The notes: generated from the sequence alone by a model not told the origin. Shown: positions 3,386 to 62,501, counted from the first letter of the stretch. The stretch is 64,000 nt of DNA from Bugula neritina (GCA_964035545.1 OZ037773.1:3191751-3255750), one strand, 5' to 3'. Numbers and translations: made by a program.

Positions 3386-3873
3386 TTATTTGATGCATTT
3401 ACAATTTCCAGAACCAATACTAAATCTTCTGTACCCTTGCTTTAAGCATCTCTGCCGGCAGTTCCAATTTATGTTGGGCTTTTCGCTGCGTCGGCAAGCT
3501 TCTGCTACGGAAGCTGTTATAAATATTTTACGAAATAGTCAAATTTTAGTAAAATAAATACACTCAAACAGGATATGTATAAACTGTGCATGCATTGCAT
3601 AATGTGAAATTTTATTCTCATGGTCAATAAACACACATACTGTTCTAAATTCAAGTAATAATAGTTATTATGGTAAGAACTTCTTTAACTGGTTTCCATG
3701 AGAATTTGGGCTCTGAAATGTCATCATATTATAAAATATATATAAATGTCATCAAAAATTTGAATATGGAAGTCAGGTTTTATGATTATAAAATAGAATA
3801 CATGTAATTAATTTGATCCACGCAATGCACAGATGGTATTCATGGCGCATAAAGGAAAAACAATGACCTTCAT
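3386..3873 (-). CDS. Defensin-like peptide gene copy 1 (59 aa, ORF open, weak splice donor)
   Basis: Exon 3822-3873 MKVIVFPLCAMNTICAL (donor C|GTGGAT) plus exon 3386-3513 PSVAEACRRSEKPNINWNCRQRCLKQGYRRFSIGSGNCKCIK*. The 52-nt first coding exon and the CxxxC..CxC pattern match the 61769 gene. Confidence 0.65.
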
Positions 3874-5018
3874 ATTTGGTGTGTTACTGTAAACAACGAT
3901 CAATATACATATACAATTCATGTCGTTTAACATACATTGAAAAGTATGAAATATAACTATGATTCATTTTTCACATTTCCTTCACATCAAGTTTCAATGT
4001 CACTATAATTAATTCTAATCATGTTTATTATATTTTTAAAACTTTATAAACAAGTATGCTGTTTGAGAAACATGCTCCCATGCATTGGTCAATAAAAAGT
4101 TCTATCTAATTCGAATAAAATTGTTGCCCTAAAAATTATTCTTTATTCATTTAAACAAATTGTATGAGTAAATTAGAAAGTTTTTTTTTTCAACAAAAAT
4201 TATTTTTTATCTCTTTACAACATTTTTTGAGTAAATTAGCAATTTATATTTTTTAACAAGTAAAAAATATTTTTAAGATCTATAATTGGTATACCTCTAA
4301 AAAGTTTATTACATAACCAACTTTATACAGTTTATATAATATTATATAATAATAATCGGATATCCTACAATTAAGTATAACAGAGATAGAATAATAATTA
4401 TTATGTCATGTCTAATCATCTTAAAAAAAGTTCTTTTTAGATAATGATATTTTTCAACAGCACTAAAAATAAATATGCTTGCTTGTTGAGTATTTCTAAA
4501 AATGTGTATCAACAATACAAGTTATTGGAATAATGTGACAACCTAAAGAAAAGCTTAAAATGAGTTAAAAACAAATGTTACAATTGAATAAATATATGGA
4601 GAATTTTCTATAAAAGAATCTAATAAAAGCAAGTTGGCATCAAAGCCAGATTTATACTTAATTTGGTTATATCAGTTATATATATATCATTATAATGTAT
4701 GTGTTACCTTCCTATATAATGTTTATATTAACGTACAATAAACAACATACCCAATATACATGAGTGTAGCAAGATTTGGTAAATTGAAAGTAAAACAGTT
4801 TGAAGATATGACATGCTTGCATATGTTAGAACTGACTCAACTTTCTTCTGCCTATAATATTTACCAAAATATATTTAATTTCTTGTTGAATATAAAAGTT
4901 CCCATTGTTGCCTACAATTCATAGTAATAGTATTAAAATATTTCATTGCAGTTAATAAAAATATATTATTGGAAAACATTTATAATAATATAGTGCTGGC
5001 TACAGTAATAATGCTTAT

Positions 5019-8000
5019 CTAGCTTTTGATGTTGACATAAGTTTGCCCGAAAGGTGCCTCATGGTTATCTGTATTGGCTGCTTGTCTTTGAGATGTATCT
5101 AGTGAGTCATAGTTGTGATCATCCATTCTAGTGGCAGACATCTCTGTGTATGGGGAGTTATCGGTCCTAGTAGTAGACATTTCTATGTATGGGGAATTAT
5201 CAGTCTTGGTGACAGACAACTCTGTGTACAGGGAGTTATCATTCCTAGTGACAGATAATTCCGTGTATGGGGAGTTATCAGTCCCAGTACGAGCTTGTGA
5301 CCTAATTCCTTGAAAAAAAAGACAAGCCAGTTTTATTTTGCAACTAATTTTTGGATTGCAGCTTCAAGTGTAATTGTTATATATAAATATGATAGAATAT
5401 CATTATTTTATAACATCATTTTATCAATCAATAACACCTTTTAGTTTTCCAAGATGAAATGCTACTCCAGCTGTGATGATAAGTAACAGACAACCACCAG
5501 CTAATCCTCCTCCCAGAGCAGCTTTGTCTATGTTCCCAGATGATGGTTTTTCAGAAGGAGTCAAAATCGGGATTGTGGTTGATAGTGTAATAGAACTATC
5601 CCACTTTATTGTCCATGTAATAGTAACTGATTTGGCTGCATAATAAAAGCAAAATTATTATAATAAAACGGATCTTTCAATAACACTATTAATAGTTTTT
5701 GACAATAAATAGTCTCTGATCATCACAATTAGTACCATATAGCTAGGTTAACTCTCTAATTTAAGTTGTATGACATTGTTATTAAAAGGAAAGTATCAAA
5801 ATTTAAAAAAGTGCATATATAAATTGTCAGCAGTGGTACAATTTAAATAATTTCTTACATAAACCATTTCCAGCTGCGCATGAAACTGTGTCTGTTAAAC
5901 CATCAGTTTGAGAATTCAAACCCAGTTCATCAGATGATCCTATTAGCAAAGCTCCATTATATGTCCAAGTGAAGGTTGAAAGTGGTGGGTTAGCATCCAC
6001 ATGTTGACTACACTTTAGTTTAACATCAGATTGACTTGGGTTGTATTCTTTCGTGATTGGATCTTGGACACCTGGTTTACTAGCCAAATCTGCAGTGCAC
6101 CAACATGAAAATGTTGAAATTAATAAGTATATCAGGCAATATATATATATATATATATATATATATATATATATATATATATATATATATATATATATAT
6201 ATATATATATATATTTATATATATATGAAAAGGAAAATTAATCCATATGTATTGAAAGAGAAAAGTTAATGACGCTCACACTGTGGTATAATGGTAACAG
6301 TTTGTTCAGTGTTTCCTCCCTTCCACTTAGAATGTTTTGTATCTGTACAAGATAAAGTTAGTCCAGTTCTGTCTGTCTCAGTAGGAGTATACTTTCCAGC
6401 CACTGTGTTACCATTTACTTCTGTACATTAATATATATGTGTAAGTCAAACATCAACATTGGTTATAGAAGAACATCAAAGAAAAAGTATTTGGTTCTAA
6501 GTTTACAACTTCCTCAACATAACGACATTATAGTATATGAGCCTAATATGTCACTATTACGTATATATATATATAAGCATTTACAAGATGACAACATTGT
6601 TCATCAGTGCTATATCCTATAATATACACCCATTTGTATTCTCAGCTTTCTGCTACATAAATAAAGAATCTAAAATCATGCATTAGTTTTATTCAGTAAG
6701 ATGGAATAAGTCAGAAAAACAAGTATGAATCCTATTTGCATATATATATATATATATATATATATATAGAACTATACTCACCGTATTCATAGACAGACAC
6801 AGGAACTGCCCCTATAGAGTTACAATTAAAACTAAACTCTTCTCCTTCTATGATAGTTTCTTGTACATTTAGAAATATATCAGTTGGAGCCGCTGTTGAA
6901 TGAAAATAAGACATGCAAAAATATATTTCAAGTTGAGGAGTCAAATAGAGTTTATAAGAGCACTTGCTAATACTTTAACTTAATGTCTTGGCTTATATGT
7001 GATATAGATAGGAAAAATATCAAGTGAGATAGAAGCATTCAAAACATTATACTTTTCTCCTTCTGTGATAGTTTCTGATTTCCTGAGGTTAATAAGCTGC
7101 AACCACTGTTTTAATAGGAACGCATTCATAAACTGAATATAAACATTTGGTTTACAGAAATATTTCCAATAAAGTTGTTTTACTCTCGCATTAAAGTTCC
7201 TAATTATGAACAATAATAGACAAAAATCTAACGATAGCATGGCACCATGCTAAATGTCTGAAAATAAAACTATAAACTGTTTTGATAGCAGTTGAATCCC
7301 ACAATATAGAGATAAATGACATACTTTAAAAGCTGAAATTAATTAAAGTTGCATCTAAAAATTATGGTCTGCTAACATAATTTTAAAATAGACAAATTTA
7401 CTTTAAATAGGTTACCTTTGACTTCCATTGACACTTCCGAAGAGAGAATTTCTCCCACACCTCCTCCTTCAAACCCTCTACAGTAAAACTTCCCTTTGAT
7501 TGTTGAATCTGTTACAGTGAGTTGTACAGAAAGAGTGAACCCTTCAGGTTTACCAACTGAGTTACAGTCTGCATGGCTGACTCCAGGTCCTTCTATTCCA
7601 GAAACAGTAATAATATCTGGAGTTGAAGAGCTCTGCCATACTGTGTCATCCTCAGCACTTCGAGTACATCCATTTTGATAGACTGTACTGTCTCCATCAG
7701 CTTCATACCGTAACTGAAAGGTTCTCAGATCAGTATAACCAGATGCTTCACATGTGAAAGTTATCTTCTCACCTTTATAGAAATCTGGTGAAGTTGTAGT
7801 ACTGTAGTCTATCTCTGTAGATGGCTGTGCTATATATAGATGTATATATAGTAACAGCCCAGGTTACAAAGTACATCTAATACCGTGTACCAATATATAT
7901 ACAGTCAAAAACGTCTGGTTGTAAAAAATTACTTAATGAATAATAACAAAAGTGCATACAAACTGCATATACCAAATTTTAAGAATATGAACCAATTGTA

Positions 8001-61000: not shown

Positions 61001-61768
61001 TACATTACTTACCAAATTCAACTTATATGTAGAGATTATAGCTATATAGGTGGTTTACAGGAAACATGTTATAAGTTTATAGTATCTATTATCTCTTATC
61101 TATTAAAATAATGCCTATAAGATATGCTATATGGCAAAATATCAAGTTCTACTTCATGATATTGTATCTTCCAACTATTATCAATTATTTATAGAACATT
61201 ATCCTTGAATAAGAAAATGAAATAGCAAATACATACTATATATGTAAAGGAAAACATTGCTGTAACATATGATTTAATAACTTTCTAGCTATTGTATTCA
61301 GGGCAATTCAGAACAATTCAGCAATCAGTCATTCAACGAGACCTCCGGAACATTAAATTAATACAATAATGAACTATTTATATATATTATATAGCTATCA
61401 TCACAAGATTCTTTAAAATTTATTTGAATACAACAATTGCTGAATAAAAATAATATGAAGAAAGTGTTAGATTAATAATTATTTCCTAATGATGGAAGTT
61501 GATAGCCAATATTAACTCAAAGCTGCACGCATTACCCTGGATCTAGAAAACATATATAAGTAGTGAATCTTATACTATACTTATATTACTTACTCACAGC
61601 AACTGTGTAAATTATAACTTACAATTGGTAAACACAAAGAAGGTGAGGAATTACATTTATTTTCACTCATTAACAAATATTACTATAGTTCTATTTATGG
61701 TATTTGCCATCTATAGCAGATATGATTTTTATATTGTTGATCTTACAGTGTATTTTTGAAGATCAAAT

Positions 61769-62501
61769 ATGAAAGTCCTTACAGTACTTTTATTTGCCAT
61801 GATTGCCTTGAGTGCATTGGGTAAGTTAGAAATAGTTACATGATATACTTTTTGCTTCATTATAAAGATTTTTTTACATTATATAGTTGAATTATCTGCA
61901 ATTAAGTTCTGCATAATTATGCTAAAGCGTAATATAAATAAATGCAACATAAGCATTTCAAAGTGTAGTTTCTTATATAGGAACTTGTTAGAAATTTCTA
62001 ACAAGGCTTTGTTCTTTTCATCATTACTTGAAATCGTGATAGATTGGTGAAATGATGAGTGATTTTATTCTTGTATCCATGTTTCAACAAGTTTGCATTT
62101 ACTTTTGATTAAATAAAGTCAGGAAAAACTGCAGCATAATAGTTATTTAAGTTTTCTATTGCATTATATTGTATGAAAAGCTGTTATAGCAGTTGATCAC
62201 AGCGATTTAATAGTATTTTATGTGTGCATGTATTTGCTGACTACTCATGTAAAATTTGAGACAATACCATAATAACTCATTGCATAAAAAGTATAATAAA
62301 TCCAATAAACTTGTTATAATTATATGCTGTTGAAGTAGAAATTGACTATAATTATAATAATATTCCATAATATCATTTACAACTTCAGTAGCAGTGAGTG
62401 GCTACAAAATTCCTAGAGCCTACCAGGAATGCAGAGAGAAATGTGCAAAGAAAGGGAAGACAAAATCTTATCTCTATAAAGGGGCTTGTATATGCATCTG
62501 A
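61769..62501 (+). CDS. Small secreted cationic cysteine-rich (CSab/defensin-like) peptide, 54 aa
   Basis: Exon 61769-61820 (MKVLTVLLFAMIALSAL, donor G|GTAAGT) plus exon 62389-62501 (acceptor CTTCAG; VAVSGYKIPRAYQECREKCAKKGKTKSYLYKGACICI*). Features are a signal peptide, a phase-1 intron, CxxxC...CxC and net charge about +7. There is a TATA-like CATATATAAG at 61551 and a likely 5'UTR intron at 61643-61748. Confidence 0.8.

Follow-up and report, generated by a model that had tools for sequence, protein, structure and literature searches.

Immunoglobulin-superfamily receptor genes and interspersed defensin-like peptide genes in Bugula neritina, probably linked through segmental co-duplication

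In the S-locus of Brassica, the genes for the receptor kinase SRK and its defensin-like ligand SCR are tightly linked. The typical cysteine-stabilised alpha/beta (CS-alpha/beta) fold has six or more cysteines, and its third disulfide ties the N-terminal segment to the sheet. Insect defensins have three or four bridges, and in the insect defensin-like nasonins a phase-1 intron follows the signal peptide (PMC2853521). The Hydractinia allorecognition complex (Alr) consists of clustered single-pass immunoglobulin superfamily (IgSF) genes and pseudogenes with ITAM/ITIM tails, and its V-set-like domain is missed by Pfam and was modelled confidently as V-set; defensin-like genes are not described as part of this system (PMC9546547). 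We found no paper on defensin-type peptides or on immune or allorecognition receptors in bryozoans, and the locus described here gives candidates for both.

The window, a stretch of 64,000 nt of Bugula neritina DNA from one haplotype of one genome, contains a tandem cluster of IgSF receptor genes on the minus strand, with small defensin-like peptide genes interspersed. The receptor genes are:

Receptor A, 5019-10000, minus strand: signal, V-like, Ig (two exons), V-like, Ig (two exons), Ig3, transmembrane (TM) and tail; all exons open
Receptor B, 14853-20451, minus strand: like A, with an additional Ig3 exon following the first Ig; all exons open
Receptor C, 31311-35755, minus strand: 5'-truncated copy without the signal exon and the first V exon
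Receptor D, 37482-42296, minus strand: architecture as in A; exons open; no downstream peptide gene
Receptor E, 48203-49091, minus strand: two V-like exon relics with stops, pseudogene fragments
Receptor F, 51310-54776, minus strand: divergent and shorter, with signal, V-like, Ig, Ig3, TM and short tail

The original prediction of an IgSF transmembrane protein is upheld by the fold of the V-like domain and by the tyrosine motifs of the tail. A Pfam search with the V-like domain gave no match. Its AF2 model (pLDDT 94.4, pTM 0.89) had 74 Foldseek matches in the PDB at E ≤ 0.001, with VH/VHH and CD8alpha as the best, and the membrane-distal domain is thus predicted to adopt a V-set Ig fold. The two Ig cysteines of this domain are invariant in 29 sequences. 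Matches of the window receptors to Pfam Ig_3 stayed under the cutoff (E 3e-4 to 3e-3). The signal exon is conserved in receptors A, B, D and F, TM exons were identified, and the receptors have a single TM helix. Among themselves the V-like exons show 77-85% identity, with dN/dS of 0.35-0.86. The remaining V exon of receptor C contains one stop and one small indel, and this copy is likely a pseudogene.

Tail motifs were scored with the definitions used in PMC9546547, i.e., [ILVS]xYxx[ILV] for ITIM and YxxL/I-x6-12-YxxL/I for ITAM. In every receptor tail from A to F, the short one of F included, one ITAM-like span is found together with one or two ITIM-like motifs, and two to six YxxM motifs occur in the tails of A to D. 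A 13-aa tyrosine repeat occurs in four copies in receptor A and in nine in receptor B. Judging from these motifs, the tails may function in signalling.

True homologues of the receptors are the uncharacterized proteins XP_067939872.1 and its paralogues from Watersipora subatra (V-like E=1e-5, 37% identity); in the Watersipora homologue, Ig_3 scores above the Pfam cutoff (31.4 bits against 30). Both sets are laid out as V-Ig-Ig-TM, and their tails contain YxxL-x9-YxxL before a Y-x-N-I-K ending, whereas the Watersipora receptors have a single V-like domain and lack the 13-aa tail repeats. Receptor F has the architecture of XP_067939872.1. The window receptors also resemble Hydractinia Alr in forming an IgSF cluster with pseudogenes, in their Pfam-invisible V-set-like domain and ITAM/ITIM tails, and in the colonial marine host. 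A sequence relationship with Alr is not detectable, and the bryozoan V-like domain differs in retaining the two Ig cysteines. The clustered family parallels findings in the Hydractinia histocompatibility complex, and if its receptors are polymorphic, it would be an entry point to colony-recognition genetics in a third colonial phylum.

The peptide genes and the elements around them are:

Peptide gene A, CDS 3386-3873, minus strand: signal exon 3873-3822, intron, mature exon 3513-3386; frame open
Peptide gene B, 13113-13591, minus strand: broken by a signal-exon frameshift; acceptor region of the intron gone via a small deletion
Peptide gene C, 23612-30164, minus strand: broken by a signal-exon frameshift and a ~6 kb retroelement complex inside the intron
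Retroelement complex, 23960-30010, no strand assigned: partial, inverted copies of one retroelement, with (TA)n on the flanks
Inverted copy of the receptor 3' flank, 59233-60214, plus strand: no receptor coding sequence attached
Putative promoter and 5' UTR of D', 61506-61748, plus strand: CCAAT 61506-61510 and TATATAA 61553-61559, read by eye
Peptide gene D', CDS 61769-62501, plus strand: exon 61769-61820, GT..AG intron, exon 62389-62501; stop 62499-62501
Relic of a second D'-type mature exon, ~63590-63701, plus strand: decayed, with stops and with cysteines lost

Each copy of the gene has a signal-peptide exon with a hydrophobic leader and a mature exon, separated by a phase-1 intron, and the product is presumably secreted. 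As first described, receptors A, B and C (stop codons at 5019, 14853 and 31311) are each followed on the same strand by a peptide gene (ATGs at 3873, 13591 and 30164), the distances from stop to ATG being 1146, 1262 and 1147 bases. The warning that two or three of these linked copies are decayed was justified: B and C are broken, and the splice donor of A, like that of B, is poor and non-consensus. Exon 2 of copy C is present at 23739-23612 with its frame still open, parted from exon 1 by the intronic retroelement of ~6 kb. The divergent fourth gene, D', is indeed apparently intact and is the only fully canonical copy: its intron has a GT donor following position 61820 and an AG acceptor ahead of 62389, and the stop is regular. 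Its CCAAT and TATA-like boxes align with those of the A-type copies, a 5' UTR intron of 106 nt (61643-61748, by eye) is possible, and AATAAA is present downstream of the peptide genes. The second D'-type exon near 63.6 kb shows that the peptide family has been duplicated without a receptor.

Peptides of the A type and D' are only 31% identical, yet the four cysteines and their spacing, C-x3-C-x14-C-x-C, are invariant in all four copies. Conservation is limited to these four; a fifth cysteine is private to copy A and has no partner. In six frames of the window, the pattern C-x3-C-x(10-18)-C-x-C near a stop occurs four times, each time in a peptide exon, and it was not found in 210,606 bases of related loci. 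The motif is therefore not a chance pattern. Exon 2 is also better conserved than its noncoding surroundings, with 96.1% against ~87% identity between A and C (Fisher p=0.0024) and p=0.019 between B and C. The three units agree in orientation and spacing, and exon 2 remained under some constraint after duplication, so the peptide copies were not junk initially.

In the AF2 model of the mature peptide, which was based on an alignment of four rows only (pLDDT 78 overall, 80-92 in the core), a helix spans residues 14-24 and strands span 29-33 and 36-40, with C18 and C22 in the helix and C37 and C39 in the last strand. The ten best Foldseek matches in the PDB are all CS-alpha/beta toxins or defensins (rmsd 1.1-3.1 Å over 24-29 columns), at E values of 0.65-2.1, which are not significant. 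As in insect, scorpion and plant defensins, scorpion K-channel toxins and nasonins, the modelled helix carries C-x3-C and the final hairpin strand carries C-x-C, and the gene likewise codes for a signal peptide, has a phase-1 intron after the leader, and yields a short, strongly cationic mature peptide (+7 to +9). The peptide differs from these families in having only four conserved cysteines, with which two disulfides are possible and the third of the CS-alpha/beta type is not, and in that no sequence homologue was found for it. The idea that CxxxC...CxC marks a CS-alpha/beta core stands as far as helix and strand placement and the class of the ten fold matches go, but not in terms of significance (E ≥ 0.65), sequence or profile matches, or the usual number of three disulfides. 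Plausibly, the peptide has a minimal CS-alpha/beta fold with two disulfides, and the model suggests that C-x3-C pairs with C-x-C. Its most likely role is that of a secreted effector, toxin-like or acting in host defence, as proposed from this predicted fold.

The three receptor-peptide pairs are one arrangement that was copied in a duplication unit of ~10 kb, since the units are colinear: the A and B units align continuously, ~1580-6150 with 11257-16148 and beyond, at 88-92% identity, in a block that covers the receptor 3' half, the flank, the peptide gene and the next upstream region. At the D/C junction, which lies at an (AT)n tract, neither the peptide gene nor the 5' end of receptor C is present. 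Gene D' does lie downstream of an inverted receptor 3' flank (59233-60214; 79-83% identity to 4283-4857, 14001-14822, 30557-31152 and 36264-36783), but with ~1.5-1.7 kb between flank and ATG against 0.25-0.4 kb in A. This flank shows much less divergence than the adjacent D' gene, a contrast for which a simple co-duplication history does not account.

The window resembles the Brassica S-locus in that a membrane receptor gene adjoins a gene for a small Cys-rich secreted peptide. It differs in that the receptor is an IgSF protein with tyrosine motifs and no kinase, and in that the copies are not alleles but lie in tandem as paralogues on a single haplotype. Tight linkage is present in three units, all of them copies of one block. 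The partners have not been kept intact together, peptide B being broken while receptor B is open, and receptors D and F, both open in all exons, have no peptide gene downstream, as had been cautioned. Peptide and recognition domain do not co-vary either: in agreement with another earlier caveat, the mature exons are 93-95% identical to copy A whereas the V-like exons differ more, a comparison among paralogues only. As to whether the linkage persists in relatives, the 10 kb around each of four Watersipora receptor loci contain no peptide gene of the C-x3-C...C-x-C type; these receptors are distant, and a diverged peptide with a different Cys pattern would escape the search.

The peptide sequences could be conserved-looking open frames in intergenic DNA that are never expressed, or all copies including D' could be dead. 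For neither peptide type did 5.8 billion proteins or metagenome contigs yield a homologue, a Pfam search gave no family at E ≤ 10, searches of PDB sequences, made with single peptides as well as with a profile, gave no defensin and no toxin, and three of the five copies are visibly broken or decayed. This reading is nevertheless quite improbable in view of the identical cysteine spacing in paralogues of such low identity, the two-exon phase-1 structure with leader in every copy, the canonical splice sites of D', the aligned CCAAT/TATA boxes, the confidently predicted helix-hairpin core, the constraint on exon 2 relative to its flanks, and the absence of the motif from 210 kb of comparable DNA. 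If the genes are real, the short and highly positive peptide might be directed at ion channels, like scorpion K-channel toxins, and serve in defence or prey handling instead of acting as an antimicrobial, with its linkage still passive. Among the ten best fold matches, six are such toxins or a designed derivative, but one scorpion defensin, in several copies, and an insect defensin make up the other four at equal scores, so that the fold does not separate the activities; with no similarity to any toxin in PDB sequences or Pfam either, we regard a channel toxin as unlikely.

A further proposal is that of a linked receptor-ligand or sensor-effector unit, in which the peptide would be the cognate ligand of the neighbouring receptor in colony or gamete recognition, or a co-regulated effector, and selection would keep the linkage. 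Identical strand and nearly constant spacing in three units, the higher conservation of exon 2, a receptor with a V-set-like recognition domain and signalling motifs, and a host that is probably a colonial animal, for whose phylum no self/non-self recognition genes were found reported, all speak for it. The three pairs, however, were copied from one block; among the linked peptide genes, B and C are broken and the splice donor of A is poor, while receptors A and B remain open; the intact receptors D and F are unpaired; the sole canonical peptide gene lies ~7 kb from receptor F, diverges from it in orientation and has no receptor 3' end alongside; near-identical peptides face differing V domains; CCAAT/TATA boxes of their own precede the peptide genes; and the Watersipora loci have no such neighbour. 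Functional coupling is thus unsupported and unlikely. The stronger version, in which the array is a bryozoan self/non-self or immune recognition complex, each peptide serves the adjacent V-like receptor as cognate ligand or as dedicated effector and the broken copies are birth-and-death losers, is very improbable; if true, it would be an animal counterpart of SRK/SCR. Passive hitch-hiking, originally mentioned as a fallback, fits best with the copying of a single block and the decay of the linked peptides, and we consider it probable that the pairing reflects passive co-duplication and not a working receptor-ligand system.

On this favoured reading, the IgSF array is lineage-restricted and undergoes birth and death via unequal crossing-over, deletion and retroelement insertion. 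The peptide gene is a separate unit between successive receptors, equipped with CCAAT and TATA boxes, and receptor and peptide would be independent of each other. Their adjacency probably arose once and was multiplied because the ~10 kb duplication unit includes both genes. The carried-along copies A, B and C would have been constrained for some time and would now be decaying, with the old paralogue D' alone staying canonical. If it were real, a receptor-ligand cassette would be important; on present evidence the arrangement looks like a side effect of segmental duplication; the candidates offered by the window are the peptide family without sequence relatives and the clustered receptor family.

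The retroelement complex in the intron of peptide gene C, which we read as Penelope-like, retains one open frame of 704 codons (24422-26536, minus strand).

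Receptors A, B and C belong to a tandem array of IgSF receptor copies (A to F) on the minus strand, and each is followed by a small two-exon peptide gene. This layout, part of the original prediction, was borne out, with gaps of 1146, 1262 and 1147 bases between the receptor stops and the ATGs of peptide genes A, B and C (the A-type genes). A fourth, divergent peptide gene, D', lies on the plus strand. Receptor exon kinds were defined by tblastn with exon translations and by inspection of reading frames and splice sites. Each is phase 1, and the kinds are a short signal exon, a 143-residue V-like exon, an Ig domain spread over two exons, an Ig_3-like exon, a transmembrane exon and a tail exon. 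The window is AT-rich animal DNA (G+C 25-38% in 2 kb windows), and searching it against Rfam gave no RNA families.

Receptor and peptide gene features (window positions; the receptor signal exon is conserved only in A, B, D and F)
10000, minus: signal exon ATG of receptor A, layout V-Ig-V-Ig-Ig3-TM-tail
20451, minus: signal exon ATG of receptor B, with one Ig3 exon more than the layout of A and D
42296, minus: signal exon ATG of receptor D, layout as in A
54776, minus: signal exon ATG of receptor F, shorter (V-Ig-Ig3-TM-tail), resembling a 424-residue Watersipora protein
Receptor C, minus: signal exon and first V exon absent, stop inside the remaining V exon
Receptor E, minus: pair of V relics containing stops
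5019, 14853 and 31311, minus: stops of receptors A, B and C
5128-5288 (A), 14962-15278 (B), 31420-31697 (C) and 37607-37751 (D): tail-exon minisatellite
3873, minus: ATG of peptide gene A, frame open, donor non-consensus (as in B), leader weaker
13591, minus: ATG of peptide gene B, one leader-exon frameshift, acceptor region gone through a small deletion
30164, minus: ATG of peptide gene C, one leader-exon frameshift, intron with a ~6 kb complex of retroelement copies
24422-26536, minus: open frame of 704 codons within the retroelement complex
23739-23612: mature exon of peptide gene C, present and displaced by the intronic insertion
61769-61820 and 62389-62501, plus: exons of D', canonical GT..AG intron, gene canonical throughout
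63590-63701: decayed second D'-type mature exon, 1.1 kb downstream of D'

To call the larger genes Ig-domain signalling receptors seems fair, with signalling suggested by their tail motifs. The V-like exon had no match in Pfam, and its model (pLDDT 94.4) resembles V-set domains such as VH, VHH and CD8alpha, with 74 PDB matches at E<=0.001. All tails, that of F included, contain at least one ITIM-like motif and one YxxL-x9-YxxL/I span; tails A to D additionally have two to six YxxM motifs and a terminal YxN. The 39-bp coding minisatellite in tail exons A, B, C and D encodes 4, 9, 7 and 4 copies, respectively, of a 13-residue tyrosine motif (YxxL or YxxM), so that the number of putative docking sites differs among the paralogues. 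Diversifying selection on the V-like exons was considered and rejected: dN/dS was 0.35-0.86 and never above 1, and the predicted loops were not enriched in variable sites (Fisher p=0.73).

In every peptide copy a phase-1 intron separates a hydrophobic leader exon from a mature exon of 36-41 residues with a net charge of +7 to +9. Four cysteines are invariant and identically spaced across the copies, D' and the A type share 31% identity, and a fifth cysteine is restricted to copy A. Across all six reading frames, the window contains the pattern C-x3-C-x(10-18)-C-x-C near a stop codon four times, each time at a peptide exon; the pattern was absent from 210,606 bases of related bryozoan loci. Inspection by eye of this AT-rich DNA gave CCAAT and TATA-like consensus boxes aligned among the copies about 170-260 bases 5' of the ATG, a putative short 5' UTR intron ending immediately before the ATG, and AATAAA about 150-210 bases past the stop. 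A reading of the peptide exons as downstream receptor exons, or as a second, operon-like cistron, was not adopted, since the receptor ends in a stop and the small genes appear to have aligned promoter-like boxes and an ATG and leader of their own. The mature exon of copy C is not missing; the retroelement complex in the intron accounts for its position. No leader exon was found for the relic downstream of D', and further members of the family may be clustered past the right end of the window.

The original prediction also likened the peptide to defensins, and here predicted fold and sequence disagree. Database searches, run exon by exon, gave no homologues of the D' and A-type mature exons in a word-indexed search of a 5.8-billion-protein index, nothing in Pfam at E<=10, and no relevant match among PDB sequences, either with single peptides or with a four-row profile. 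Metagenome scans with the peptide alignment and with a receptor-tail alignment returned pattern matches, none of which was confirmed. The AF2 model from the four-row alignment (mean pLDDT 77.9, core 80-92), on the other hand, has a helix (14-24) that bears C-x3-C and a hairpin (29-33/36-40) that bears C-x-C. When the model was compared with the PDB by Foldseek, the top ten matches all belonged to the cysteine-stabilised alpha/beta class (scorpion K-channel toxins, one scorpion and one insect defensin), with rmsd 1.1-3.1 A over 24-29 columns and E values of at least 0.65; lucifensin, heliomicin, nasonin-1 and a plant defensin appeared further down the list. Three or four disulfides are present in known insect defensins (PMC2853521), whereas the bryozoan peptide permits only two. 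The model plausibly places it as resembling a minimal alpha/beta defensin or toxin module, rather than as a demonstrated member of either family.

Self-comparison of the window showed that units A and B are colinear throughout, from the receptor through its 3' flank and the peptide gene into the next upstream region, at 88-92% identity, and that C and D contain large parts of the same unit. The three receptor-peptide pairs therefore represent one ancestral arrangement that was copied, not three observations. An (AT)n tract (35858-35944) lies exactly at the junction between the receptor D 3' flank and the 5'-truncated receptor C; peptide gene, upstream region, signal exon and V exon are absent there, and the tract is likely a deletion or unequal-exchange breakpoint. 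Exon 2 of the peptide genes is more conserved than the surrounding noncoding DNA in the A/C comparison (96.1% against about 87% identity, p=0.0024) and in B/C (p=0.019); the A/B comparison was not significant, and exon 1 showed no excess over its noncoding surroundings. The exon 2 excess argues in favour of at least a past function of the peptide genes, and the pattern would fit a history of constraint following the older duplications and of decay at present.

At D', the claim that the relative arrangement of flank and peptide gene is the same held for orientation only. The layout resembles a block inversion of the segment that usually lies between receptors, with its peptide gene and flank, and the segment adjoins a microsatellite (58956-59242). 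Identities were taken from local blastn, and global-alignment identity was dropped because shuffled controls reached 67-74%. The inverted flank (59233-60214, plus strand) shares 79-83% identity with the A to D flanks, whereas alignment of the D' gene (compared over 61380-62900) with the A type is confined to the surroundings of its two exons, at 60-65%, which indicates that flank and gene differ in age and do not share a common history. With exon translations, tblastn found no receptor coding sequence next to the flank; receptor F, the closest one, is divergently oriented and about 7 kb from D'. A reading of the flank as a dispersed repeat was unsupported, with no matches in seven related loci, a small sample.

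Only 28 relatives turned up among 1.84 billion representatives when one receptor V-like exon was used in an exhaustive HMMER search. Nearly all are single-exon ORF fragments, and the best belong to JGI samples 3300003318 and 3300002729, on contigs whose names include AY690838, an accession cited in the Bugula neritina mitochondrial genome paper (PMC2678162). One of these Bugula-type metagenome contigs (L001) is 81-88% identical in DNA to the V-like exons of the window, which is taken to come from a cheilostome bryozoan, probably a bugulid. Directly upstream of its closest V-like exon, positions 165-3065 encode LTR-retrotransposon pol domains (RVT_1, RT_RNaseH, rve). The sole named relative, XP_067939872.1, comes from the bryozoan Watersipora subatra, is uncharacterized and has five receptor paralogues, and the Watersipora tail retains the YxxL pair and the C-terminal motif of the window receptors. 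We compared the locus of XP_067939872.1 (L004) and those of three of the five paralogues (L005 to L007), each with 10 kb flanks. Neither the cysteine pattern nor a tblastn match to either peptide type was found at these four loci, a small sample from a distant relative. This absence agrees, weakly, with passive linkage.

The arrangement is probably best explained by an IgSF receptor array under birth-and-death evolution that carries an independent peptide gene within its duplication unit. By chance, a separate gene would have come to lie in the unit and been multiplied along with it, its product being a secreted cationic peptide with a two-disulfide alpha/beta fold and a host-defence or toxin-like role; most peptide copies would now be in decay, with D' alone clearly intact. 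The original prediction preferred a linked receptor-ligand or sensor-effector unit and kept passive hitch-hiking as its fallback. Adjacency in three units speaks for such coupling, but a maintained pair, with matched divergence of its partners, is not what the copies look like. Two of the three linked peptide genes are broken while receptors A and B are open, and no peptide gene lies downstream of receptors D and F, which are open. The peptides are near-identical while the V-like exons differ, as the prediction's own caveats had it, and the V exons have a dN/dS below 1 and no focus of variation on loops. Moreover, a single deletion at the (AT)n tract likely took both the peptide gene and the 5' end of receptor C, the peptide family has also duplicated by itself, and the four distant Watersipora loci contain no match to the peptide genes. 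Functional coupling is thus quite improbable.

Passive multiplication of a real gene also has to be weighed against the peptide frames not being expressed genes at all. Broken copies and the lack of homologues in the databases can be set beside that reading, and the exon 2 excess against it; we consider it as doubtful as coupling. A channel-toxin rather than an antimicrobial role, for which linkage would be passive as well, is unlikely; scorpion K-channel toxins and defensins stand side by side among the ten best Foldseek matches.

Mobile elements and simple repeats accompany the array. The complex in the intron of peptide gene C (23960-30010) consists of partial, inverted copies of one retroelement flanked by (TA)n, with one arm pair 100% identical over 1470 bases, which points to an element that was inserted very recently or to an artefact of assembly. 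The element had no Pfam or PDB sequence match; by eye, an RT motif together with a GIY-YIG-like motif at the C terminus suggest that it is Penelope-like, and it shares the (TA)n target and inverted or tandem structure published for Penelope-like elements (PMC8557442). Between receptor F and D', a stretch with higher G+C and a strong AT skew (55900-57500) contains plus-strand open frames that carry an RT-like FADD motif; it had no match in Pfam and probably represents a decayed non-LTR retrotransposon. Homology links window positions 1-3100 to the regions upstream of receptors B (20628-22925) and D (42488-44180), so that a further receptor is probably to be expected immediately beyond the left end of the window, with peptide gene A between two receptors. 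A long (TG)n microsatellite separates the receptor upstream region from the neighbouring peptide gene in duplication units A and B (2560-2967 and 12257-12696), and a third (TG)n tract lies inside the span of receptor F (53341-53482).
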